Source: Chara braunii
Lineage: Eukaryota > Plantae > Charophyceae
Assembly: GCA_003427395.1 (NCBI GenBank)
Contig: BFEA01000010.1
Span: 6,078,144-6,142,143, forward strand
Direction: 5' to 3'
Length of the DNA stretch: 64,000 nt
Under the pieces are notes generated by a model that was not told the DNA's origin, searched no databases, and worked only from the letters and a program-made list of their open reading frames with translations. Every line of letters begins with the position of its first letter. The first letter of the stretch is position 1. Shown one piece after another: positions 1 through 53,327 of the stretch. A program made the translations under genes and the position numbers.

Positions 1-278
1 AGCATAGCGATAGGTTAGAGGCAGCCATAGCTGCCATAGCTGTAGTTAGTAGCGAGTGTGTGTTGTGTTCGAGTGTTAGAGTGATGCGTGTGGGATATCC
101 AGGGTGATCCAGTGTATGTGAACAGTGAGATGTTTGGGCGCTGAAGTCGCCATAGCCATTTGAGAGTGAATTCGTATCTGAAGCCATATCTCTGAGTTTT
201 GAGTGGGCGCATGTCGCCAGTGTGCTGTGTTACTGTTTACATGTGTGAAAAGTGTGTTTGAAAACGAGTCTGATTGCA
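1..278 (+). repeat. 3' part of an LTR of family D (cut by window edge)
   Basis: Reverse complement of 55330-55640 and 62562-62870. Ends ...GATTGCA, with no PBS following. Confidence 0.8.
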
Positions 279-9530: not shown

Positions 9531-10319
9531 TGACGAGCGCGAGGCTGAGGGAGAGGCGAGGGGGAGGAGAGAGAGAGGGAGAGAGTGAGAGCACACACAC
9601 ACACTCACTCACTCGACACGACTGAGGGTCGGACGCAGACACAATGGCAAGGGCACAAAGTCGAAGTCTTGGATTCCGAATGCCCAGACAGCAAGTCACA
9701 CTGAGTACAAGGACAGCAGATGAAAACTGGTACGAGACTGATTCCCATACTGTACGGGGAGCCGGTATAAGTACCGGTGACACGTCCGGTACCAGGGGCA
9801 CTTCCGCAAAAGCCCCAAGGGCAGAACTGTAAAATGCGGTATTTGAAAGTGGCGCCCGAATTGCAGCATGGCGCCAGTTGTCCAAAATCCGACAGTACCA
9901 AAGGAGGGGTTTGGAAAAACGGATGCCAGGCCGAAAACGGGATGCGGCAGAAACAGCAAAAAGATAGACCAGGGAACAGTGAGGCAGCAGGCCATCGTCC
10001 TCGTGCGCTTGCCATTAGTCCTTTATCGCCGGCGTCACACAGGTTCATAAGCATTGGACAAGAGAGACAAGGTAGTGGAGAGGACAGATGGGACAAGGCT
10101 AGGCAAGGGCAAGCACAGATCAGACATCAGAAATCGGGGTCGAGGGGAGGGTGGACTGGGTTCAACGGGGTTGCGAGGTTGTAGCAAGGTTTATACAAGG
10201 GTTTAGGGTTGTGGTTACGTGGGTGTCTAGGACATAGGAGTAGCACGATCATAGGCGCGGACAAGTTTCATGGCATTCTTGAGATTCGAGAGAGGTTCCC
10301 ATGTAGATTTCTCGTCGGG

Positions 10320-13300
10320 TTATCCAGTCCATTTGACTTTGTATTCAGTGATTGGTTCCGGGTGGTCAGATACCTGAGTAGTTCGTCGACCTATGATTGC
10401 TTCAACAACAAATTCAGGGCTTGTGGGTAACATGCTAGGTGGAGGTCTAGGATACGGGCGGTCAGCGAATTGGGGTGGGGATTCATGATATTCTTTCAAG
10501 TATTCGACGTGGAAGACCGCATCGACGCGGCTCATGTCGGGGGGGAGTTGGAGTTTGTAGTTGACGTCGGAGGTTTTTTCAATGACGGGGAAGGGTCCGA
10601 GACATTTGTTCGAGAGTTTTTTTGACAACCCATGTTCGGGTTCAAAGCATTTTGCAGACAGCCAGACTTTGTCCCCTACTTTGAATTGCAAGTCTTGTCT
10701 GTGTTTGTTGATCTTGTTTGCTTGTTGTTCTTGTGTTCCTTCGAGGGCTTCAGTTGCTTCTCTGAGGAGTCGATTCATTGTTGCTACCCATTCATTGAGG
10801 GAAGGGCAACGTGTGGAAGGGTTGAGTTCCGAGGGAAGCCGGAAATCAGAGGGCACGCTCGAATGGTAGCCAAGGTCAAGGTAGAATAGAGAAACCAGTG
10901 GAAGGACAAACAACGTTGTTGTAGGCGATCTCGACGACGGTGAGCTACCCATTCATTGAGGGAAGGGCAAGGTGTGGAAGGGTTCAGTTGCGAGGGAAGC
11001 CGAACATCAGAGGGCACACACGAATGGTAGCCAAGGTCAAGGTAGAATGGAGACATTGGGACAGACAACGTTGTTCTAGGCGATCTCGGCGGCGGTGAGC
11101 AACTGATCCCAGTCGTGTTGATGTGGATGACAATACTTCCGTAGGATTCCTTGGAGAGTATCGTTCATCTTCTCTCGGTTTGTCCATCGGTCTGTGGGTG
11201 GAATGCAGTGCTATACTTGAGTATTTCCGTAGGCGTTGAAGAGTTGTTTCCAGAACTGTGAGCGGAAACGGGGATCGCGGTCGCTGATGATATTCTCGGG
11301 GAGGCCGTGGTAACGTGCAGAATGGTCGAAGAAGAGTAAGGCGATTGTCTTTGGCGGTGTGCTAGGTGGAGCTAGGAATGAAGTGGGCGTGTTTGGTCAG
11401 GCAACAGACAATGACGTAGATGCAATCATGCCCGCGGTCGGTCTTAGGGAGACCGCACACAAAGTCCATGGAAATGGACTGCCACCGGTGAGTGGGGATG
11501 GGCAATGATTGGAGCTTGCCGGGTTTTGCCCGGTTCGAGGGGTTGACAACCTGACACATGGGACATGAGCGAATGTATGTTTTGACGTCGGCGAGTAGAG
11601 AATGTCAATAGAAGTAGCGGGAGATGGTGTCAAAAGTTTCCTGGAAACCGAGGTCACCTGCAGTCTTGGCGTCCTGGTCCTCGGCCAAGAGCTGCGTATA
11701 GAGACCACATGTGTCGGGGATGCACAGTCGGCGAGTGCCTTTGGTGTCGATGTAGAGGAGGTTGTCGTTGAGGGAGTAGTCGAGGACAGGGTCAAGATCA
11801 CGACGCTTTTTGTAAATGGCGACGAAGTCTGCGCAAGAGAGGTAGCCTTGAGTGTATCGGTGACGAAGTGATGGGAGGAGCTGGATATGGGTCATGGCGG
11901 CGTAGACTTTCTCGGGGGGCTTGCAATCGGGTCATCGAGAGAGGGCTTCAGCAACGCGGTTGCTTTTGGCGGGGGTATGACAAATGGTGAATGTGAACTG
12001 GCCAAGGAAGTCGAGCCATCGAGCTTGGCGTGGGGTGATGTCTTTCTTGGTGAGGATGGAAGAAACGATGGTGTTGTCAGTGCGGATGGTGAAGTATTGC
12101 CCGTCGAGGTACGGGCGCCAGACTGTGAGGGCGTGAATCACGACGAGTTCCTTCTCGTTGGAGGGGTAATTCATCTCCGTGGGAAGGAGCGTCTTGCTTG
12201 CGAAGGCGATGGGTATTCGCTGGGTGGAGCCTCGAGGTGAGTGGGCGAGACCTTGATGGAGGGGGTCTCAACGGTGTCGCGAGGGACATGTTGGGACAGT
12301 ACGGCTCCAATGGCGAAGTCGAAGGCATCAGTGGTGACATAGAAATGCGAGTGGGGTCGGCGATCTTACGGACAGGGGTCGTGGTGATGGTTTGCTCGGG
12401 GAAGTCGAAAGCGTGTTGGCGGCGATCGTTCCAATTGAAGGGCTCGTCCTTGCGTGTGGGGTCGGCGATCTTGAGGATAGGGGCCGTGGTGATGGTTTGC
12501 TCGCGGAAGTCGAAAGTGTGTTGGCGGCCATCGTTCCAATTGAAGGGCTCGTCCTTGTGTGTGAGTTCGTGGAGAGGGTAAGAGATCACGAAAAAGTTGG
12601 GTGGTAATAGTTGGCAAGGTCGAGGAAGGAACGGTTGGGCGGGGGATACTCGACGAGGGTTGTGACCTTCGAGGGGTCCATACGGATGCCTTCAGCGAAG
12701 ACAATGTGGCCAAGGTATTCAACGCTCGAAGCGGCAATCGTACATTTGTTGAGCTTGGCGTAGAATTTTTGCTCCCGGAGGATCGAGACGACTTGGCGAA
12801 TGTGCTGAAGGTGGGACTCGAAGGTGGGGCTAAAGATGAGGATGTCATCAAGGTACACGACGACACAGACTTCGAGGAGGTCATGGAAGATGTGGTTCAT
12901 GGTGGACTGGATATGGCGGGGGCATTGGTGAGTCCGAAAGGCATTACGAGGAACTTGAACCGAGAGCGGAATGCGGTCTTGTGGGTGTCCTCCTCGCGCA
13001 TACAAATCTGGTGGAAGCCACTGCGGAGGTCGATCTTGGTGAAATATTTGGCTCCACGAAGGCGATGAAGAAGTTCAGATATCCGCGAGAGTGGGTACTT
13101 GTTCTTGATCGTGATCCGGTTAAAGGCACGGTAGTCTGTGCAAATGCGGAGTTTCGAGGTGCCGTTCTTCTTGACGGAGAGACAACTGGTTCCGAAGGGG
13201 GAGGAGCTAGGCTTAATGAATCCTTTTTCAAGGAGTTCATTGAGCTGGCGCTTCATTTCTTCGACCTCGGGGACGAAGAGTTGGTACGGAGGGCGGCAAG

Positions 13301-15342: not shown

Positions 15343-16700
15343 CAAATTCCATTGCACGATCATGACTGATGGATGGACCAACATTCGATGTCAAACATTG
15401 TGGAACTACCTCGTCGGAACCACGAGGGGGGCCAAATATGTTGCCACAAATTCCGTTGCACGATCATGACTCACGAATGGACCAACATTCCGTGTCAAAC
15501 ATTGTGGAACTACCTCGTAGGAACCACGACGGGCGCCAAATATGTCGCCACAAATGTTATGAGAGGGAAGAAGGATGCCAATGCTCTAGCGCAGGCTCGA
15601 CGGAAAAGGTTGAAGTCCCTTGACATTAAGCTCGCAGATATTACAACTTTCGTCACACACTCGGCTTGCTCGATCTTCTGCCGCACGTCATGGACCACAT
15701 CCTTGAGGACATTGTCGACATTGACTGGGTGGGGACGCATATTGCTCAGGCGCAGTTGGTCACGAAGTTTTTCAATCGCCATAGTCATGCTCGCAAGGTT
15801 TTGCAGGAGTTCACGTTGATGGCACTATTGCTTTCTGTTGAGACTCGCTTTGGCACGCATGTCATTGTGATGAGACGACTTCCGTTACTGCAAACGAAAC
15901 TTATGCAGGTGGTCATTGATGATCGATATAAGGACACTGTCTGGTCAACGAAGAAGATTTGAGATGATGCCGCGGAGGTTACAGCATGTGTCGGGTCTCC
16001 TCTATGGTGGGAAGATATGAGAGCGGTGTGCAAGTTGTTGGATCACATCATGAACATGTTGTAGATGGTGGACAATGACACGAAGCAGATAGGTGACATT
16101 TGCGTCGGTATGATAAGATGACCATATCTTGTTTAAATGTCTGTGTTGGTTTTAATCGGGAGGAGCAAGATGTGGGGCTTGAGGTGTTTGACAGACGTCG
16201 AACCATGTTCAAGTCACTGGCTCATGCAGCTGCCATGATGTTGGATCTTGAGTTTTGAAAACCCTACACTGCGCAGGGGTTGATTGCTGCTTTGGTTCAG
16301 TTCGGCTACCGTGAGAGCTCAAACCAGCACAAGGAGGTCGTCACAACCATCCACAAGTTTCATGCTAGGGAGCCACCATTGCACAACATGGCCATGGATC
16401 GGGCGGCACGGAGCCATAGCCATCCAGCCAGTTTCTGGGAGTCTAAGCAAAAGAGATTCCCGCATACGGCCCTCGTCGTCGGCAGGATCCGTCGTATGTG
16501 GGCGACGGCATCACCTTGCGAGAGAGCTTGGTCCCACTGTAGCTTCATCCACTCCAAATCTCATAACAACTTGGAGGTTGCACAGGCCGAGAAGCTCATG
16601 TGATGCCACTCGAACATTCGGCTTCTTGACAGACCCCCGATCTCGAACAATGCTCCCAATGTCAGGCCTCGTTCGTACGAGAGTTGGGTGCACTACTCGC
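15343..16700 (+). pseudogene. hAT-family (DUF659-type) transposase remnant with C-terminal dimerisation domain
   Basis: TIMTDGWTN...LWNYLV, SVETRFGT, ATASPCERAWSHCSFIHSKSHNNL motifs. 104-bp tandem duplication at 15343-15446 / 15447-15550. Stops and frameshifts. Confidence 0.85.
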
Positions 16701-19700
16701 AACATTTGGAGGACTTGCCCACCAACCAGCAGCTTGTCTCAGGCCAAGGTTCCCATGCGACGATGACACGAGAGAGAGGATGTGCGTTGTTTCCCGCATG
16801 AGAGCCATGCGTCGATTGCGGGAGTTGGACAGGAGGAGGCGTGCTAACAGCAATCGCAAGGCGGTCGTCAGGGAGGTTGTGGACGAGGCGGGTGTAGAGG
16901 AGTTGGCGGCAGGATGTCTATCGCGAGTCGTCGACTGTCGGTGGATCACCTTGTACGCAAACTTCAACAACGCTGGGAGGTCTACCGCGAGTCGTCGACT
17001 GTCGGTGGATGACCTTGTACGCAAGCCTCAACAACGCTGGGACGAGGGAAGACGTCTTGTATGAGAGCTCGTCCAGCGACGATGAGGATTTCTTCGGAAA
17101 TGGCACGCCTGCAACGGGCGTTGACAATGATCCTGACGACCGCCACCCGAATGGAGACAACGACGATGGTGCAAGAGGCGACGATTGCTGTGATGGAGGA
17201 GATTGGTTGTGGCGATGCTCGACACGTGGAGATGGGGACAGAGTGGGTGACAACGATGGAGCAGGGGCGATGGTCATGATGCCGGTGACGCTAGTGCAGG
17301 GACAGGTGCAGCGGGCTCGACACGTGGAGATGGAAACATAGCGGGCGACAACGATGGTGCAAGGCGGCTCGATCATGATGACGGTGACATCAGTGCAGGG
17401 ACAGGTGCACGGGGCTCGACACGTGGAGATGGAGACCATGGCATCGACTACCGCTTACCCTCGAATGACAATGGAGATGGAGGGGACAGCGACAGTCCAA
17501 GACTTCTTCTGAGGACTCTTTCAGCGACGACGCCCATGAGAAGCGGATCGGCACCGATGATGGGAGCGGTCTTGCACAAAATGACACCGGGAGTATGCAC
17601 CGGGACTCTTTCTGAGGACTCTTTCAGCGACGACGCCCGCGAGAGGGGAGCAGACCACAGATGCCGCCTCCTCGACTCATGGGAGACAGTGCATATGATG
17701 TGGTACTACAGGAACAAGGTAGCAATCCAGTACCACATCCACTCGCATCAGCAGTCAGATAGGACGCAGCTGCAGTGAGGTGAGACACAAGAGGACCATC
17801 GGTAGTAGAGGAGCAAGACAATATGCCCCCACCTCGAAGCACGATTGACGTGGGGGAAGGGATTGTGACCCGTTCTTGCAGCACACATGGATTTCAGCCC
17901 GACGTCGTCAACGGAAGGGTTGCTATGCAGCGTTTAGAGACAGAGAGAGCAGATGCAAATGGCAGCGCACCGCCTACATTGATTGAGGAGAATGTTATCG
18001 CGTGTCTAACTGTTGCTCACCCGGAAGGGGAGGTTTCATACACTCCCGCACCTTAGGAGAGCGCCGACGGCCATACCGAGCTCGCATGCCCCACGGGCAA
18101 TCTTTCGGGTGATAGCGAGTTATTGGCCATGGACTCGGCACTCATCTCTCTCCCAGACTTGTCCACTTTGATATCTCCCAATTTACCCCAGATGTCATCG
18201 CCTCACCTACATCAGCATGTTCGCACAGAGCAAGGTGGTGATGCCTTTAACGAGTTGATGGCGATGCGATACTCCATCCAAAAGTGTCCACCACACCCAC
18301 TGTTTTCCGTGTGGGCATACCACGCAAGGTGAACCTTGGTAAGGCTAAGACGGCAACACGACAATGTCCCAATGGTCCCCGCAGCACTGTACAGCGCAGT
18401 CTATCCGATTTGTTTGATGGACTGCCTCCATGCGGTGGCGGGGAGGAGGGTGGCTTTGTGGCATGAGGCGCAGTTGACGGAGCAGCAGGCCCTCCAGGTC
18501 CGTCGTCACATTCAGAGCAAAAGTCCGCCAACGCAGCCGGTGGGGTGGACAGCGGTGATCAGCTGCAGCAGCGTTTGGCAGGTTCGTCAACATAACATGC
18601 TCATCACGACGACCCCCATAGACGGTTATCGAGCGCCCCACACACATTTCATGGGCAGCGGCAGCTCCTAGAAGGGTCAGCGATGGCACATCGTCGCGTA
18701 GACGCCCCCCTACTACCCTGCGACATGCAATCACAAGCGTCACCGCCACGAACACTGCTAAGGCCACATAGCAGCCTATAGTGGGGTCATCGGCGACAGC
18801 ACCTCGTGTCGACGATCCTCGCAGTTGTGCTTGTTCTGTGACTGCTGTATTGCCGATGGTATTCTATAACCGCAGGACCATAGATGGGGGGTTCGGTGAG
18901 CAAGGAGTTGGAAGTGATTGTAGGCCATCAGTACCGTCTATGGGGACACGATCCATCGAGATTGTTGGTGGTGCTCGCGACAACGCCATGAGAGAGTACA
19001 AGGACCGACATGGGAGTACTTTGCCGACAAATACATCGGATGTCGCTTTCACAAGGGTCGTGAAGGCGAGTCTTTCTTGGGCGGGGAAGAAGGACGCGGC
19101 AAGGAGATCGTCACCACATATGCATCCTCATCCGAGGCTTTCCTGCCCTGCACATCTGGAGGATGGAGAGATTGCACCAGAGAGAGGTGCATTGGATGAT
19201 GGAGGGAGGACTGTAGGAGGAATAGGAGGCACGATTCAGAGATCGGATCGTGTGCATCAGGCTGGCATAGTTGCTGCGATGGACGACCGCTGTCAGAGGG
19301 CGCGGTGTCCCGGCCCTCTGTGCGTCAGGCTCCTGTTTGGTACCAGCACCTTGCTCGGACGCCTGTGGCTCATCGGGCTGCTCCCAAACCTCCGTGACTC
19401 TTCTGGAAAATCCGAATAGTCCCCCGCTATGGGTCGGTTGAGACAGTGATTGCACCCAACAAAAGGGTGCGCCACTAGGCTTTCCATTGGTCCACACAGG
19501 CTCGGCGCCCTGCTGTACAACAAAGCACTACCAGCCTGTGGCCGTGGTAGCCGCTGGGCTCGCCTAGGGACGCGGATGTAAATAGACCGGCGCAGTCTTT
19601 TCTATTGCGCGCCGATCGCTCCCTGGTCAGGTTGGTGGTCGCTGTCAGAGAAAGAGAGGTTAAGCAAAAAAGTACAAGAAAAGTGAAAAGAAAACTAAAG

Positions 19701-37668: not shown

Positions 37669-37809
37669 GTTACTCGCTCGAAGGGACCTCACTCTTGAGG
37701 GAGGAGTAGTGTGATGACCCGTCCAAACATGGACTGAAACACAGCTGATTTTCGAGTTTTGCCCATAGACTGAATGGCTTGCTGTGTTTCCTGCCTGCTA
37801 CTAAGTCTG

Positions 37810-38040
37810 TGTGTGTGGCCATGCCTGTCTGAGTGCTGGTCGGTTTGAGTGTGTGTGTGGCCGTGCCTGTCTGAGTGCTGGTTGGCTTGAGTGTGTGTGT
37901 GGCCATGCCTGTCTGAGTGCTGGTTGGCTTGAGTGTGTGTGNGTGTGTGTGTGGCCGTGCCTGTCTGAGTGCTGGTTGGCTTGAGTGTGTGTGTGGCCAT
38001 GCCTGTCTGAGTGCTGGTTGGCTTGAGTGTGTGTGTGGCC
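37810..38040. repeat. ~42-bp minisatellite inside LTR A
   Basis: About five copies of gtgtgtgtggccRtgcctgtctgagtgctggttggcttga. Confidence 0.85.
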
Positions 38041-38216
38041 CGCAAGGGCACTTGCTCGTTCATTGGGCCCTCAGCGCAGGTACTTACCTGTGGCCGTGAC
38101 ATTGAGGGATTGCAGCAGGAAAAACACCCAAGTAGCGGGTAGGCCGGCACAACACCCTGAAGGGGTAGATGTGCAGGTACTGGAGGCCGAACAGAATAAG
38201 ACAAAAGTGGCATTTT

Positions 38217-40085
38217 ACTTTTTTCTTTTCTTTTCAAAAATGCCCAGGTTGTTGTAGAGGCGCGGTATCAGGCACAGGGATGATCTCCAGGGTTCAATCG
38301 CTCGAGGTGCGTGACGGCCCACAGCCCATAGCTTTCTGGACCGTTCTTCAGACGGGGTCCTTATAGAGGCTTTTGAAGGCCCCAACCTATCGTAAGCCGT
38401 GTCCCTACCTACACCACCAGCTTGCCACTAGAGATCAGATTACTATCCCTACAGATCCAACCTCCAACTGAGTGCTATCGGGCACACTCTAAGTAGTCTT
38501 GTCCTCCCACCCATGACTTAGTAGATCCCCTTAAGCCGGTCCCCCCTTGGGTAGGTGTAGAGTCTTATCTCCCTCCTATTATTGTAGAGTATCTACTTAC
38601 CTCCCCCCTAATTAGGAGACAGGACCCATATACAACCCTTACCCAAGCTACACTTTATCGGCTTTTGTCCTCTCTACTAGCCCCTCATCTCTTTGTATCT
38701 GTCTTTCTCATAGTCTACCTATACACGGTCCTACGCCCCTATGAGCACTTTAGGCCCCATAGTATCGTGGCCATGAGAATACCCCCAATATCTGCTTACT
38801 ACCTAGAGACGACCAGCCAGCTAGATGTTCCTAATCGAATGACCGGGTGCACCTACTGGACCATCAGACAGACTCTAACTACTTGGGCTATTCCAGGTAG
38901 TATTTCTGCCTGTGACGATTTCCCTCCCACCCATGCGGTCTCCGCCGATGGTTCATACAGCTGCGGCATGTGAGTCACCTACTCCCCTTGGGCGGTTGAG
39001 TTGCCTGTTTAAGCAATCTGCACTATTCAACCCCACCTACCACAATACTCCTGTCCCCCCCCCCCCCTCACACACACACCCCTGAATAGAGCGGGCCTTT
39101 ATACCCCCGAGGTACGAGACACCCACGAGGGGGAACTGTTAGTCCTTGCTTGCTCACTGTGTCCCCTGGCCCTATGACGGTCCACACTTAACCCGGAACT
39201 ACCGTAGTACCCAGACATCAAGGTGGGGCATCCACAGGGCTAGGCAGGGAGTAGCGGGCTAGGGGTTCACTGGGCCTGTATTCTAGTGCCATCTAGTGCT
39301 GCTATAGGCCTGTATTCCCATGCTTATTAGTGTATATGTATTGTATATATATTGCAAGGTTCAAGTGGGGTCCAACTGGGGTGCCATATTTTTCATTCTA
39401 GTACTATCTGGGTTTTTTCCCACAGGCATGACAGGCTTAATCCACAGTGAGTGCACAACACAGATCTCGTAACTACACATCGGTCACTCATCCCACTGCT
39501 GTATCAGTCTGAGGGCGCTTGGCTTTCAAGGTTCAAATGAGATCAACTATATCAGCCAGTTGCCTTCTGGATTCCTCCCCCACCATTGCCCTCCCTTCCC
39601 CCTGCCCCCCGGTGAGTGCACAACACAGATCTCGTAACTACACATCGGTCACCCATCCCACTGCTGTATCAGTCTGAGGGCACTTGGCTTTCAAGGTTCA
39701 AATGAGATCAGATATATCAGCCAGTTGCCTTCTGGATTCCTCCCCCCCCATTGCCCTCCCTTCCCCCTGCCCCCCCTTCTCCCCCCATGGAGTGCCAACC
39801 AGACGGACCTAGGATCATCAGAACAGCGTGCAACCAAACCCCGAAAGATCATCCCCCAAGCCTATCCGGCATACAACAACCATGGACGTGAACCCCTTGG
39901 GCGGTGCGCAGGCAGTGTCTGTATAAGTACCATGCGTCGTCCCAAGGGGGGGGGGCGAATGGCCAGGCGCTATGAAAGCGCGAAACGGCAGAAATGCGCA
40001 GGCCGTGAGTTTTGAACCCACGACCTTATACCACAATGCGCATTTCTAGCCGCTGCCTTAACCACTAGGCATCAGGCCATTCGCC
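38217..40085 (-). mobile_element. Giant tRNA-box SINE-like retroposon, full-length copy
   Basis: A box (40062-72), B box (40009-18), TTTTT at 38236-40 followed by A-rich tail, 14-bp TSD AAAAGTGGCATTTT (38203-16 / 40086-99). No credible long ORF. Confidence 0.75.
39954..40085 (-). ncRNA. Structured Pol III head (tRNA-derived) of the giant SINE
   Basis: 11-bp closing stem, D-arm-like hairpin, long arm enclosing a T-arm, and a third hairpin. Confidence 0.65.
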
Positions 40086-40099
40086 AAAAGTGGCATTTT

Positions 40100-41718
40100 C
40101 TTTTTTTTTTTCTTTTTTTTTCTCTTTTTTTTTAAATTTAAAACGCCTAGGTTGTTGTAGAGGCACGGCCTCAGGCACGGGGATGTTCTTCGGGGTTCAG
40201 CCACTCGAGGTTCGAGATGACCCACAGCCCTTAGCTTTCTGGATCATCCTTCAGACGGGTCCTTATAGAGGCTTTTGAAGGCCCCTAACCTATCGCAAGC
40301 CGTGTCCCTACCTGCGCCACCAGCTTGCCACTAGAGATCGGATTACTGTCCCTACAGATCCAACCTCCAACTGGGTGCTATTGGGCAAACTCTAAACAGT
40401 CTTGTCCTCCCTCCCTTGACTTAGTAGATCCTTTCTTAGGCCGATCCCCCCTTAGGTAGGTGTAGAGTCTTATCCCCTTTACCCCCCTAATCAGGAGACA
40501 GACCCCCTTCAACCCTGACCCAAGCTATACTTTATCGGTCCTTTTTCCTCTTCCACTAGTCACCTCATCTCCTATACCCTTCTGCCTCATAGCCTACTTA
40601 TGCCAGGTCCTACGCCCCAGGATGGGCACTTTAGGTCCCTAGTATACTCAGTCCCACGCCCCTGGATGGGCACTTTGGGCCCTGGGTATCGTAGCTATGA
40701 GGGTATTCCTCTTGTCTATTCACTGCCTAGAGACGACCAGCCAGCTAGGTGGTCCGGAGCTATGACGTGGTACACCTGCTGGACCAGCAGGCAGACTCTA
40801 ACTACTTGGGCTATCCAGGTAGTATTTCTACCTGTGGCGATTTCCCACCCACCCATGCGGTCTCCGTCGATGGCCCATACAGCTGCTGCATGTGGGTCAC
40901 CTACTCCCCTCTGGTGATTGAATTACCCGTTAAGCAATCCGGGTCATTCAGCCCTACCTACCACAATGCTCCTGTCCCCCCCCCTCACACGCACACCCCC
41001 TGAATAGAGAGAGCCTTTATACCCCCGAGGTACGAGACACCCACGAGGGGGAACTTACTAGACCTTGCTTACTCACTGTGTTTCCTAACCCTATGGAGGT
41101 CCCACACCCAACCAGGAAACTACATAGTACCCAGACATCAGGGTGGGGCTCCCACGGGGTGAGGCAGGGAGTAGCAGGCTAGGAGTTCGCTGGGCCTGTA
41201 TTCCAGTGCTTACTATTTTTTAGTATATTGTATATATATACAACAAGGTTCAAGCGGGGTCTAGATGGAGTACTGTATATATTTCGTTTTCTAGTGCTAT
41301 CTGGGTTCTTTCTATAGGCATAACAGGCGCAATCCACAGTGAATGCACATCGCAGATCTCGCGGCTACATATTGGTCACCCATCCCTGTGCTGTATCAGT
41401 CTGTGGGTGCTTGGCTTTCAAGGTTCAAATGAGATCAGGTATATATCAGCCAGTTGCCTTCTAGATTCCCCCTCCCCATTGCCCCCCCCCCCCCCCCCCC
41501 CCCTCCATGGAGTGCCAACCAGATGGACCTAGGATCATCAGAACAGCATGCAACCAAACCCCGAAAGTCCATCCCCCAAGCCTATCCGGCATACAACAAC
41601 CATGGACGTGAACCCTTGGGCGGTGCGCAGGCAGTGTCTGTATAAGTACCATGCGTCGTCCCAAGGGGGGGCGCTTGGCTTTCAAATGAGATCAGGTATA
41701 TATCAGCCAGTTGCCTTC
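40100..41718 (-). mobile_element. Second, 5'-truncated copy of the giant SINE-like element
   Basis: Collinear but clearly diverged from 38217-39950. A-rich tail at 40100-40135. Head missing. Confidence 0.75.
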
Positions 41719-42999
41719 TAGAGGCCCAGTAGTTGTAGGTTAGGTCTAGGTGGATACCAGTCCAACCAGTCTGGGTCTAGGGCCTGTACGAACAATATCA
41801 GAGTCTGCAATGATGTTTCCCTCCGAAAGAGGGGAGGTATCGGTTGCTTGGGGCGCCGAGCGGCCTGGAAGTCACCGCCGGAAGAGGAAAGCAGGCCGCT
41901 ATATCCCCCAGTCGGGCGAAGAACCCGGCCTGTTTTTCGGTGTGCAAGTTTGGCGACACACTGGTGGAGTGCTGGCTGGAGCAGCGCTGCTGGGGAGGAA
42001 GAAGAAGGACACGAGGGAGGAAGAAGGGAGGAAGGGGGAGGAAGGGGGAGGAGCGCCAGGGGTACTTACCTGGCTATGGTGGCAACCATCTTCATCACCT
42101 TGGTGGGCATTGCGGCAGGGAGTCCCCAACTGGGGAGAGCCACACCAAGAAGCTTCAAGGCAGGGTCAGGCATGGCGGCCTGAGCTTGAGCAGCCATAGC
42201 TGCTTTGGGTTGTCCTTTGGGCATCTGGGCAACGCCTAGTAGTCCGCCATAGCCTCGGCCTATGAGAGTGAAGAGGGGAAGAGGCGGCCATGGCTATGGT
42301 GGATCTCAAGTAATACCTGCAGTAGAAGAGGAACTCAGACATTGATTCTGGATCAGCCATTAGACATTGTACTATTATTTCTTGTATGAATAAGAGAGGG
42401 GGAGATAAGGTGGAGGAGATTGTTGGGCGAGGAACAAGAGCCTTGACATTTGTCTATGCTGGTGTACATCATCTTCTTCTTCCTCTAATCCTCCCTCTCT
42501 CCTCTCAAGTTCATTCATTTCTTTCTGCAATTGGAAGGCATTGTACTTTCTGATGGATGTGTATCTCGAAATTGGCCAGGATTATAACAAGTTATTTCAT
42601 TATTTTTCTCAAAAATCGAAATAATTATTCCGCGACTTTCAATGCAGAATTTTTGTTACGAATTCCGTCTTCTAAAAATTGGAATAATTCCACGAAATTC
42701 TTTTCTGGAAATTTCAAAGAATGTTGTAAACCTTTTCCAATACCGTTAACAAGTGAGATTCGTTTTTTTTAATTAACAAACGTTTTTCAAAATCTGAATG
42801 TTACCCTTTCTGCGGCTCGTTATCTGATAGATGCCTGCCTAATTCTCAAATCGACAGATTTCCAAAAAAAAAAAAAAAAAAAGAGAGCTTTTTCTTTTTC
42901 ATTTTTCTGTTGATTAGTACCTGAGATTGGAAATAGCAATCCGGATGTTTGCCTGTCTGCCAGATTTCTTCCCACCCCTCTTTGCACAACAGCAGCGCC

Positions 43000-51569: not shown

Positions 51570-52886
51570 ATAATTCTGTTCAGCTGGGCAAAGACAGCTT
51601 GCCACCCAAAGGAAAAAAAAAATCACTACTGTGATGACCCGTCCAAACATGGACTGAAACACACGACTGATTTCTGAGTTTTGCCCATAGACTGAATGCC
51701 TTGCTGAGTTTCCCACCTGCTACTAAGTCTGTGTCTGCACGCTTGCTGGACTGCATATCTGTCTGAGTGCTGATTGGCTTAAGTGTGTGTGTGGTCGTGC
51801 CTGTCTGAGTGCTGGTTGGCTTGAGTGCCTGTGTGGCCCGCAAGGGCACTTGCTCGTCCATTGGGCCCTCAGGGCCGGTACTTACCTGTGGCCGAGACAT
51901 TGAGGGATTGCAGCAGGAAAAACACCAGAGTAGCGGGTAGGCCGGTACCACACCCTGAAGAGGTAGATGTGCGGGTACTGGAGGCCGAGCAGAAGAAGAC
52001 AAAAGTGGCATTTTTAGAGGCCCAGTAATTGTAGGTTAGGGCTAGGCGGATGCCAGTCCAACCAGTCTGGGTCTAGGGCCTGTACGGGCAATATCAGAAT
52101 CTGCAATGATGTTTCCCTCCGAAAGGGAGGAGGTACCAGTTGCTTGGGAGGCCGAGCGGCCTGGAAGTCACAGCCCAAAGAGGCAAGCAGGCCACTATAT
52201 CTTCCAGCCGGGCGAAGAGCCCGGCCTCTTTCTCGGTGTGCAAGTTTGGTGACACACTGGTTGGAGCGCCGGTTGGAGCAGCGCTATCCAGGAGCAGCGC
52301 TGCTGGGGGAAGGAGAAGGACACGGAGGAGGAAGGACAGGAAGGGGGAGGAGCACCAGGGGTACTTACCTGGCTATGGTGGCAGCCATCTTCATCACCTT
52401 GGTGGGCGCTGCAGCAGGGAGTCCCCAACTGGGGAGAGCCACACCAAGAAGCTTCAAGGCAGAGTTGGGCATAGCGGCCCGAGTGAAGCAGCCATAGTTG
52501 CTTTGGGTTGTCCTTTGGGCATCTGGGCAAGGCCTAGTAGTCCGCCATAGCCTCGGCCTATGATGAGGAAGGGAGGAGGAGGAGGCCATGGCTATGGCGG
52601 ACCTCAGGTGGTGCCGGCAGTGGAAGAGGAACTCGGACATTGATTCTGGATCAGCCATTCAACATTGTATTATTATTTCTTGTATGAATAAGAGAAGGGG
52701 GAGATAAGGAGGAGAAGATTGTTGGGCGAAGAAGAAGAGCCTGGTCATTTGTCTATGCTGGTGTACACCATCTTCTTCTTCTTCTAATCCTCTCTCTCCT
52801 CTCAAGTTCATTCATTTCTTTCTGCAATTGGGAGGCATTGTACTATCTGATGGATGTGTATCTCGAAATTGGCAAGGATGATAACA
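51570..52886 (+). mobile_element. Intact solo LTR of family A
   Basis: TGTGATGACC...GATAACA with TSD CTAC on both sides. Confidence 0.92.
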
Positions 52887-53062: not shown

Positions 53063-53142
53063 CTAACTTTCCGCGGCCGTTTGGCTATGTTCAAGTGTAG
53101 TATCTGTTCAGATCAGTTATCTGATCCGTCGTCCATCGGACC
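53063..53142 (+). pseudogene. U2: U2 snRNA 5' fragment (~80 nt) with A-rich tail
   Basis: cggccgtttggct...tcaagtgtagtatctgttc, stems IIa and IIb present, no Sm site. Confidence 0.8.
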
Positions 53143-53327
53143 AATTTAAAAAACAAAATTAAAAACAACAAAACACTAACCTTTCCTGTTTCCACCCTAG
53201 GGATACACACTCAAAGGAAAGGAGAACCACCAAAACCACTATCAGTAGCACAGATCAAACTCGTCGGAAATGGTCTGTTTTCCATTAATTCTATTACGAT
53301 AGAAATATGTGGGGATCTCAGTTGTGT

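Follow-up and report, generated by a model that had tools for sequence, protein, structure and literature searches.

The window analysed here, a 64-kb stretch of Chara braunii DNA, contains a non-coding composite retroposon. An L1-type endonuclease and reverse transcriptase integrated it on two occasions, using one and the same nick site, into an LTR of a Ty3/Gypsy element. The resulting two copies of 1.6-1.9 kb lie next to each other inside this one LTR. We tentatively read the element as a Pol III-started, LINE-mobilised composite retroposon whose 3' end resembles that of mammalian T+ SINEs and which is three times longer than any SINE.

Two insertions in one LTR

Copy 1 is full length (38217-40085, minus strand, ~1,868 nt; 1,849 nt without its tail) and consists of a head, a region A, two 5S-like units, a 1.2 kb body, a run of five T, and an A-rich tail of 19 nt as read from the sequence (38217-38235, minus strand). 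Copy 2 (40100-41722, minus strand, with its 5' end at 41718 when the microhomology at the joint is left aside) measures ~1.62 kb. It is headless, holds one full 5S-like unit at 41347-41465 and ends in an A-rich tail of 40 nt (40100-40139, minus strand).

As the initial annotation had reported, copy 1 is bracketed by a target-site duplication, aaaatgccacttttg. Its upstream (40085-40099) and downstream (38202-38216) copies on the minus strand are identical. We count the duplication as 15 bp; it is 14 bp long if the final g is assigned to the element. The nick for the insertion lies at TTTT/TA. In a paralogous LTR copy, the duplication sequence is present just once (52000-52014, minus strand), and the flanks of this copy (51627-52886) are collinear with 37707-38216 plus 41716-42589. 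Because the paralogous LTR at 52 kb thus shows the empty site, copy 1 and copy 2 are both true L1-type retropositions. Four hallmarks of a LINE-mobilised retroposon are found at the locus, namely a target-site duplication, 3' A-rich tails, a T-rich/A nick and a precise empty site. Copy 2 has no target-site duplication of its own, and a 4-nt microhomology (tcta, 41719-41722) marks its 5' joint. A single dimeric insertion event is excluded, since the duplication flanks only copy 1 and one copy of it separates the two elements.

The body (38241-39446, minus strand) spans 1.2 kb and is non-coding. Hidden coding capacity was rejected for both copies, as no ORF exceeds 105 aa (102 aa for the longest one in copy 1) and the Pfam search remained blank. 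The fold of the 3' end is no better than that of shuffled sequences (z = +1.3), and compensatory pairs are absent between the two sequences. No LINE was found in the 64-kb window, where the reverse transcriptase ORFs are of the Ty3/Gypsy type.

Further copies were sought in an additional 112 kb of C. braunii, covering five loci around related Gypsy pol genes, from which both the element and its head are absent. At the insertion site, eight more copies of the LTR are empty, and the idea that the element specifically parasitises this LTR is therefore unsupported. Protein searches with the spurious ORFs, word-based as well as exhaustive with HMMER, returned nothing save one irrelevant low-complexity match, and scans of metagenome DNA with two conserved motifs were blank. 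Four low-depth DNA runs contain 56-66% of the 31-mers of the element, which hints at several copies and gives no count, and 13-18% of its words occur in four small putative RNA runs.

A tRNA-like head and internal 5S-like units

The head of copy 1 (39955-40085, minus strand) is a hairpin-closed domain of 131 nt with a folding energy of -75.9 kcal/mol (z = -7.0) and an 11-bp terminal stem. It encloses a degenerate class II tRNA-like cloverleaf of the Leu/Ser type with a long variable arm (39998-40079, minus strand). Among Rfam families, tRNA matches the head best; the D and T arms agree with the model, and the score of 15.9 bits (E = 0.59) stays under the gathering score of 29. ARAGORN draws the class II cloverleaf at its 80% threshold only and none at default. 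[quoted passage not shown]

The initial annotation had also placed A and B boxes at the 5' end, and motifs of both kinds are indeed located there. The A-box-like motif (40062-40072, minus strand; element positions 14-24) agrees with TRGCNNAGTGG in 9 of 11 positions, and the B-box-like motif (40008-40018, minus strand; element positions 68-78), which lies in a regular T arm, agrees equally well (9/11) with GGTTCGANNCC. The window contains two instances of the minimal A/B-box pattern, compared with 0.45 expected. SINEBase expects an internal Pol III promoter to drive SINE transcription, and treats the presence of boxes as an indication of this, not a proof (PMC3531059). The first base of copy 1 lies 6 nt ahead of the tRNA-like +1; counted from this base, the A box is at +14 and the B box at +68. 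Pol III begins transcription 10-12 nt before tRNA +1, and the A box is found at tRNA +8 (PMC5356446); the 5' end of copy 1 fits the expected Pol III start site for its head.

Downstream of the head follows region A (39786-39954, minus strand), which starts with a poly-C tract and exhibits two hairpins. It shows 96% identity between the two copies, versus ~84% elsewhere. Next comes the first 5S rRNA-like unit (39620-39739, minus strand; Rfam 5S_rRNA score of 17.3 bits), which is preceded by a G-rich spacer and belongs to a whole unit of 165 nt (39612-39775). The second one (39455-39574, minus strand) is its tandem duplicate with 97% identity. Together with the unit of copy 2, the three units reach 17.7, 17.3 and 13.6 bits, all under the gathering score of 38. 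Their matches cluster at model positions 27-97, and the helices are mostly broken. A box-C-like sequence, GGGATGGGTGACC, occurs in each of the three units and is absent from the rest of the window; GGATGGGTGACC serves as a plant 5S rDNA primer (PMC8704621). The two units of copy 1 are probably derived from 5S rRNA. An SRP/Alu-like identity of the internal units was rejected, as Rfam gave no SRP match at E <= 10 and the best structured-RNA match is 5S.

Instead of a head, copy 2 opens with a partial 5S-like unit, cut down to its first ~55 nt (41672-41722, minus strand), which carries the diagnostic variants of copy 2 itself. Its 5' end lies within ~3 nt of position 1 of the 5S model and 49 nt before a box-A-like AGCCAAGC, and the partial unit meets region A at the poly-C tract.

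The head is hence present in one of the two copies, and the different 5' modules of both copies are joined at the same poly-C tract. This agrees with an alternative in which the mobile unit is a body of ~1.7 kb that has its 5' end in or close to the poly-C tract of region A, derives from Pol II or longer transcripts and is polyadenylated at a site of the U-rich plant type. The head and the partial 5S-like unit would then each have been added singly, when the LINE reverse transcriptase left the 5' end of the body RNA for a small Pol III RNA and copied the latter to its own 5' end, in the way in which U6/L1 and other chimeric retrocopies arise. In copy 2, homopolymer tracts lie on either side of region A, whose mosaic identity (96% versus 84%) looks as if it came from multiple template jumps; fusions between small Pol III RNAs and LINE-mobilised RNAs, double jumps included, are documented (PMC2104539, 10.1101/2025.02.02.635956, PMC6789731). 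This explanation also needs no selection for the absence of T4 runs. It is at odds with the boundary of the head, which terminates exactly where its 11-bp terminal stem closes and not at an arbitrary point, and with the missing 3' U-run at the joint. Moreover, a body that starts at poly-C has no known promoter, and a T-run before the tail of both copies, in combination with a T4-free interior, would have to be a coincidence or a feature of the poly(A) site. On balance we regard it as a credible explanation, if a less probable one than a Pol III start at the head.

The Pol III-started composite retroposon accounts for copy 2 in a different way. Copy 2 would be an abortive product, for which the reverse transcriptase halted at the foot of the head hairpin, which is very stable. 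From the poly-C tract the enzyme may then have switched to an RNA that had been initiated at an internal 5S-like unit, and have run off the 5' end of this RNA.

T-runs, base composition and the possible transcript

The first T-run on the sense strand of copy 1 is a T5 (38236-38240, minus strand) that directly abuts the tail at 38235-38217; it is a candidate Pol III terminator or a U-rich element of a poly(A) site. Its counterpart in copy 2 is a T4 (40143-40140), likewise directly followed by the tail. The interior of both copies is free of T4 over 1,845 nt in copy 1 (no AAAA on the plus strand in 38241-40085) and over 1,579 nt in copy 2, and AAA is missing from 1.29 kb of the plus strand (38241-39534). 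The T-runs and the lack of T4 before them had been seen correctly in the initial annotation, which took the element for a giant Pol III retroposon whose internal terminators had apparently been purged under selection.

The second half of this interpretation is not supported. Shuffling of copy 1 with preserved mononucleotide content yields 3.5 expected T4 runs (P of none = 0.026), which drops to 1.19 (P = 0.29) when dinucleotides are preserved. For copy 2, 2.6 T4 runs are expected with the first kind of shuffling (P = 0.06) and 0.72 with the second (P = 0.46). The observed/expected ratio of TT on the sense strand is 0.69 in copy 1 and 0.64 in copy 2, compared with 0.91 and 0.93 for AA and with window-wide values of 1.11 and 1.0. 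Given this low TT content, the counts of T3 (7 versus 8.1 expected) and of T4 lie at expectation, without any particular step at four T. Gaps free of A4 or T4 are also found elsewhere in the window (2046, 1815, 1741, 1677 and 1669 nt), and the T4-free gap of copy 2 spans 40144-42610 and thus continues for 890 nt past the element into the LTR. Since the absence of T4 fits the dinucleotide content and recurs elsewhere and in the flanking LTR, the purging claim is unsupported; the absence is explained by base composition and is no sign of selection. In the Chara braunii genome, a T4-free kilobase on one strand is by itself no signal of Pol III constraint. What stands of the original proposal is a non-coding element with poly(A) tail, target-site duplication and an empty site in a paralogous LTR, far longer than any SINE, with a tRNA-like 5' end and a T-run before the tail.

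A T4-free interior is needed by the Pol III model, yet it is not evidence for selection. According to this model, Pol III would start the RNA at the first nucleotide of the element by means of the internal A and B boxes of the head, extend it over ~1.85 kb and terminate at the first T-run. The terminated RNA would then be adenylated, and the tailed RNA copied by L1-type machinery. In favour of Pol III are the tRNA likeness of the head, the position of its boxes relative to the 5' end of copy 1, the 5' end of copy 2 close to position 1 of a 5S-like unit, the depletion of TT but not of AA on the sense strand, and the first T-run, which is kept in both copies directly before the tail, as reported for T+ SINEs (PMC8466645). 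Several observations speak against it: the head is present in one copy of two, the absence of T4 is non-significant when dinucleotides are preserved (P = 0.29 and 0.46) and is matched elsewhere in the window, the tRNA and 5S scores stay below the gathering scores, TCTTT occurs in copy 1 and TGTTT in copy 2, AATAAA is missing before the T-run, and known Pol III products are short. Among the latter, the longest product in yeast measures 522 nt (PMC7901838).

The internal motifs deserve a closer description. Copy 1 carries TCTTT at position 238 (39848-39844), where copy 2 has ACTTT, and copy 2 carries TGTTT at position 1325. Both motifs are moderately efficient Pol III terminators in mammals, and ~50% of transcripts stop at TCTTT in mammalian cells (PMC8466645). 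One could therefore argue that the head and the 5S-like units are Pol III promoters of short RNAs only, ending at the TCTTT or at non-canonical sites, and that the full-length RNA stems from a different source such as rare read-through or Pol II, with the T4-free interior as a by-product of a G-rich, TT-poor composition. The T3 and T4 counts, which lie at the dinucleotide expectation, and the short length of Pol III genes (PMC7901838, PMC5356446) agree with this explanation. The TCTTT is missing in copy 2, and the full-length 5' end coincides with the expected start site of the head, such that at least one full-length RNA began or was joined there. We regard a restriction of Pol III to short RNAs as improbable.

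Should the Pol III-started composite retroposon be confirmed, its RNA of 1.85 kb would exceed all SINEs (75-662 nt) about threefold in length and lie far above typical cellular Pol III transcripts. The route of termination followed by polyadenylation, so far described for T+ SINEs of mammals only, would then have arisen independently in the plant lineage. A wider proposal is that a streptophyte alga harbours a whole family of mobile Pol III units of ~1.85 kb ('giant SINEs'), which start at a tRNA-like sequence, give rise to nested transcripts from extra 5S-type internal promoters, stop at their only T-run, are polyadenylated and are copied by an L1-like LINE. Such a family seems rather doubtful to us, and the giant SINE reading of the Chara element is possible and unproven. 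Read conservatively, the locus shows how non-coding retroposons of Chara are built in a modular manner from tRNA-like and 5S-like pieces, and it has preserved two insertions at one endonuclease site together with their template-jump joints.

Relation to known retroposons and Pol III units

SVA and other long composite L1-dependent retroposons resemble the Chara element in being kilobase-sized, non-coding, modular and L1-mobilised, with internal repeats and SINE-derived pieces. SVA is taken to be a product of Pol II and is not known to carry a tRNA-type promoter at its very start. Cellular Pol III units in which a tRNA-type promoter lies upstream of a 5S sequence resemble copy 1 in this order of modules, but they are short cellular genes and are not mobile.

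Chimeric retrocopies mediated by LINEs, such as U6/L1 (PMC2104539, PMC6789731), also combine a small Pol III RNA at the 5' side with another retroposed RNA within one duplication. They are one-off products, however, and do not form families. Cassandra TRIMs and Helenus/Ajax (10.1101/2023.07.14.548913, PMC10886601) are non-autonomous retroelements of the plant lineage that carry a promoter core of ~70 bp from 5S or another small RNA within a longer element. These are LTR elements using an integrase, whereas the Chara element is a non-LTR one with an A tail and a 15-bp duplication.

SINEBase defines SINEs as shorter than 1 kb, with a known range of 75-662 nt without tail, and as present in at least 100 interspersed copies per genome (PMC3531059); with 1,849 nt without its tail, copy 1 lies beyond this length. 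Among SINEs, those of the SINE3 type and chimeric 5S/tRNA SINEs such as HaSE3 (PMC3272025) resemble the Chara element in having 5S-like modules with sequences of the box A and box C type, and small-RNA modules that are swapped on a shared body. The 5S module of SINE3-type elements forms the 5' head of a short element, while the 5S-like units in Chara are internal, arranged in tandem and located 300-650 nt from the 5' end.

The 3' end is best compared with T+ SINEs (B2, Dip, Ves, Can and C; PMC8466645), in which the T-run before the A tail implies termination by Pol III and subsequent polyadenylation (PMC8466645). T+ SINEs measure 150-300 nt, carry one or more AATAAA signals before the terminator and are reported from mammals only; the Chara element of 1.85 kb comes from a streptophyte alga, and both of its copies lack AATAAA in their final 100 nt. 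Common to both are a tRNA-derived or tRNA-like head at nucleotide 1, L1-type mobilisation and a terminator-type T-run just before the A tail, which is TCTTT or TTTT in T+ SINEs and T5 or T4 in Chara.

Extent of the two copies and their insertion into an LTR

Two related non-coding elements are located head to tail on the minus strand of the window sequence. Copy 1 (40085 to 38217, minus) is flanked by the perfect direct repeat aaaatgccacttttg (40099-40085 and 38216-38202) and its 3' end consists of a run of five T residues (T5, 38240-38236) and then an A-rich tail of 19 nt. Copy 2 (41718 to 40100, minus) ends in four T residues (T4, 40143-40140) and a 40-nt A-rich tail, which directly adjoins the upstream repeat of copy 1; at its 5' end four bases, tcta (41719-41722), are common to element and flank and thus ambiguous. 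In a global alignment the copies are approximately 84% identical overall, with one region reaching 96%. The longest ORF in either copy comprises at most 105 aa, and a Pfam search of the element ORFs returned no match.

The flanks of the pair (37707-38216 and 41716-42589) align collinearly with 51627-52886 of the same window. This empty paralog reads ...cctcta-aaaatgccacttttg-tctt..., and since it carries the 15-mer only once (52000-52014) and lacks the element, 38217-41715 represents an insertion. The target duplication of copy 1 is 15 bp, or 14 bp with the final g counted as part of the element. Copy 2 shows no duplication, and its 5' joint was formed through a microhomology of 4 nt. The tails of both copies adjoin the same AAAA, which places the bottom-strand nick at TTTT/TA. 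The mechanism is L1-type target-primed reverse transcription, with one nick used twice; no LINE was found within the window. The composite non-coding retroposon is real, clearly bounded and of unusual length.

The host sequence is an LTR. Ty3/Gypsy reverse transcriptase, RNase H and integrase ORFs lie just upstream of it, with Chara braunii proteins as closest relatives (76-90% identity), which identifies the species, and in five further C. braunii loci around related Gypsy pol genes (112 kb in total) the host sequence forms direct repeats around these genes. The insertion site is empty in all eight further LTR copies of these loci and in the window copy at 52 kb. Reuse of the nick is thus a local event and not a family-wide target preference, and these empty sites do not support the idea of a dedicated parasite of this LTR. 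Further family copies were found neither in the 112 kb of additional C. braunii DNA, nor by protein-database searches with spurious element ORFs, nor by metagenome scans.

Next to the insertion site, the LTR contains tandem units of approximately 40 bp with (CA)n (37900-38060, minus), including a single N at 37942; positions 42019-42055 lie within the pyrimidine-rich part of the LTR flank. Just past the second LTR copy, a U2 snRNA 5' fragment (53065-53184, plus strand; Rfam U2, 60.3 bits) is followed by an A-rich stretch and looks like a truncated U2 retropseudogene.

Small RNA-like modules

Copy 1 opens with a 131-nt head (40085-39955, minus) closed by an 11-bp terminal stem, which folds at -75.9 kcal/mol compared with -47.1 for shuffles (z = -7.0). 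With the head as sole query, tRNA ranks first among the Rfam families at 15.9 bits (E = 0.59), short of the gathering score of 29, and its D and T arms are matched. ARAGORN reports no tRNA in the head at default settings; at an 80% threshold it draws a cloverleaf of class II (Leu/Ser) whose variable arm is long (40079-39998). The head appears to contain a degenerate tRNA, the Rfam match being sub-threshold. A resemblance to eukaryotic tRNA-Ser(AGA), which we take as a lead only, extends over the D arm, the anticodon loop (CTAGAAA) and the beginning of the variable arm. Counted from the 5' end of the element, A-box-like and B-box-like motifs occupy positions 14-24 and 68-78 (minus). The terminus lies 6 nt before the tRNA-like +1; tRNA genes are transcribed from 10-12 nt upstream of +1, with +8 as the first position of the A box (PMC5356446).

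The adjoining region A (39954-39786, minus) starts with a poly-C tract and folds into two hairpins. It is the stretch with 96% identity between the copies (39786-39954 versus 41505-41671; elsewhere approximately 84%), which points to either a mosaic origin by template switching or a stronger constraint on the two-hairpin region. Region A of copy 2 lies between a poly-C tract and a poly-G tract of 22 nt.

Two tandem 165-nt units follow in copy 1 (39775-39612 and 39610-39447, minus; 97% identical), each consisting of a G-rich spacer and approximately 120 nt aligned by Rfam to 5S rRNA. The scores, 17.3 and 13.6 bits for these units and 17.7 for the copy 2 unit, are below the gathering score of 38; the matches concentrate in the internal control region (model positions 27-97), and the 5S helices are mostly broken. 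Within the units, AGCCAAGC at +50 resembles box A and GGGATGGGTGACC resembles box C; the latter 13-mer is confined within the window to the three 5S-like units (0.12 expected). GGATGGGTGACC serves as a plant 5S rDNA primer (PMC8704621). The units are probably 5S-derived promoter cores. A non-coding stretch of 1.2 kb separates them from the T-run.

Copy 2 lacks the head and begins instead with ~55 nt from the start of a 5S-like unit, which bears copy 2's own diagnostic variants. The poly-C tract forms the joint to region A for this piece as well as for the head of copy 1. Relative to the 5S model, the piece begins within ~3 nt of position 1, and the terminus lies 49 nt before box A. Both element termini thus fall where Pol III would be expected to start on small RNA-like modules.

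T-runs on the sense strand

The initial annotation explained the T4-free interior by selection against internal Pol III terminators. Its T-run counts were correct on recount; selective purging is not shown. With 22% T on the sense strand of copy 1, mononucleotide shuffles predict 3.5 T4 runs (P of none = 0.026), and dinucleotide-preserving shuffles only 1.19 (P = 0.29). Copy 2 follows the same pattern (0.72 expected, P = 0.46), and a test on two related copies has little power either way. TT is depleted in copy 1 (observed/expected 0.69; AA 0.91), a strand-specific scarcity, with TT low for the window (5th percentile of TT ~0.83). T3 runs number 7 versus 8.1 expected; without a step between T3 and T4, the pattern is unlike that of selection on terminators alone.

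Elsewhere in the 64-kb window, A4- or T4-free gaps reach 2046, 1815, 1741, 1677 and 1669 nt, one on the sense strand of a Gypsy integrase region (9963-11631), and the T4-free gap holding copy 2 extends into the LTR for another 890 nt. A single private TVTTT is found in each copy, TCTTT (position 238) in copy 1 and TGTTT (position 1325) in copy 2; TCTTT stops about half of B2 transcripts in mammalian cells (PMC8466645). The area around 15800-18300 includes the 2,046-nt stretch, which is free of T4 on the plus strand (16257-18302), has a very low AA content (observed/expected 0.54-0.70) and adjoins a strongly G-skewed segment at 10-16 kb; a Pfam scan of one ORF from this stretch (16284-16763) gave no match.

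Origin of the transcript and related systems

We tentatively regard the element RNA as a Pol III transcript, at somewhat less than even confidence; a Pol III-type 5' end is credible. Such a transcript would explain why the head occupies nucleotide 1, why a T-run marks the exact 3' end and why the interior is T4-free; copy 2 could have arisen when reverse transcription stalled at the head hairpin and jumped to another template. However, the head is present in one of two copies, the tRNA and 5S matches are both sub-threshold, and the length is unprecedented for a Pol III product: SINEs span 75-662 nt (PMC3531059), and the longest yeast Pol III RNA has 522 nt (PMC7901838). A chimera, in which template jumps added the 5' pieces to a non-Pol III body, is the main alternative origin, to which we give roughly one-third of our confidence. 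It has precedents in known LINE chimeras (PMC2104539, PMC6789731, 10.1101/2025.02.02.635956) and accounts for both the mosaic identity and the poly-C joint common to the copies, but requires several coincidences. That Pol III yields short products only, in a mixed scheme, seems improbable.

Returning to the Pol III reading, the T-run immediately 5' of the A tail, kept in both copies, is arranged as in mammalian T+ SINEs, where Pol III terminates at TCTTT or TTTT before the RNA is polyadenylated; this class is reported from mammals only and requires AATAAA (PMC8466645). Our element differs in that AATAAA is absent from the last 100 nt of both copies, and since a plant-type poly(A) site preceded by U-rich sequence would look identical, the T-run cannot discriminate between polymerases. 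For the 5S-like units, a parallel is found in Cassandra elements with their ~70-bp 5S core, and we read the units as probably similar promoter cores.
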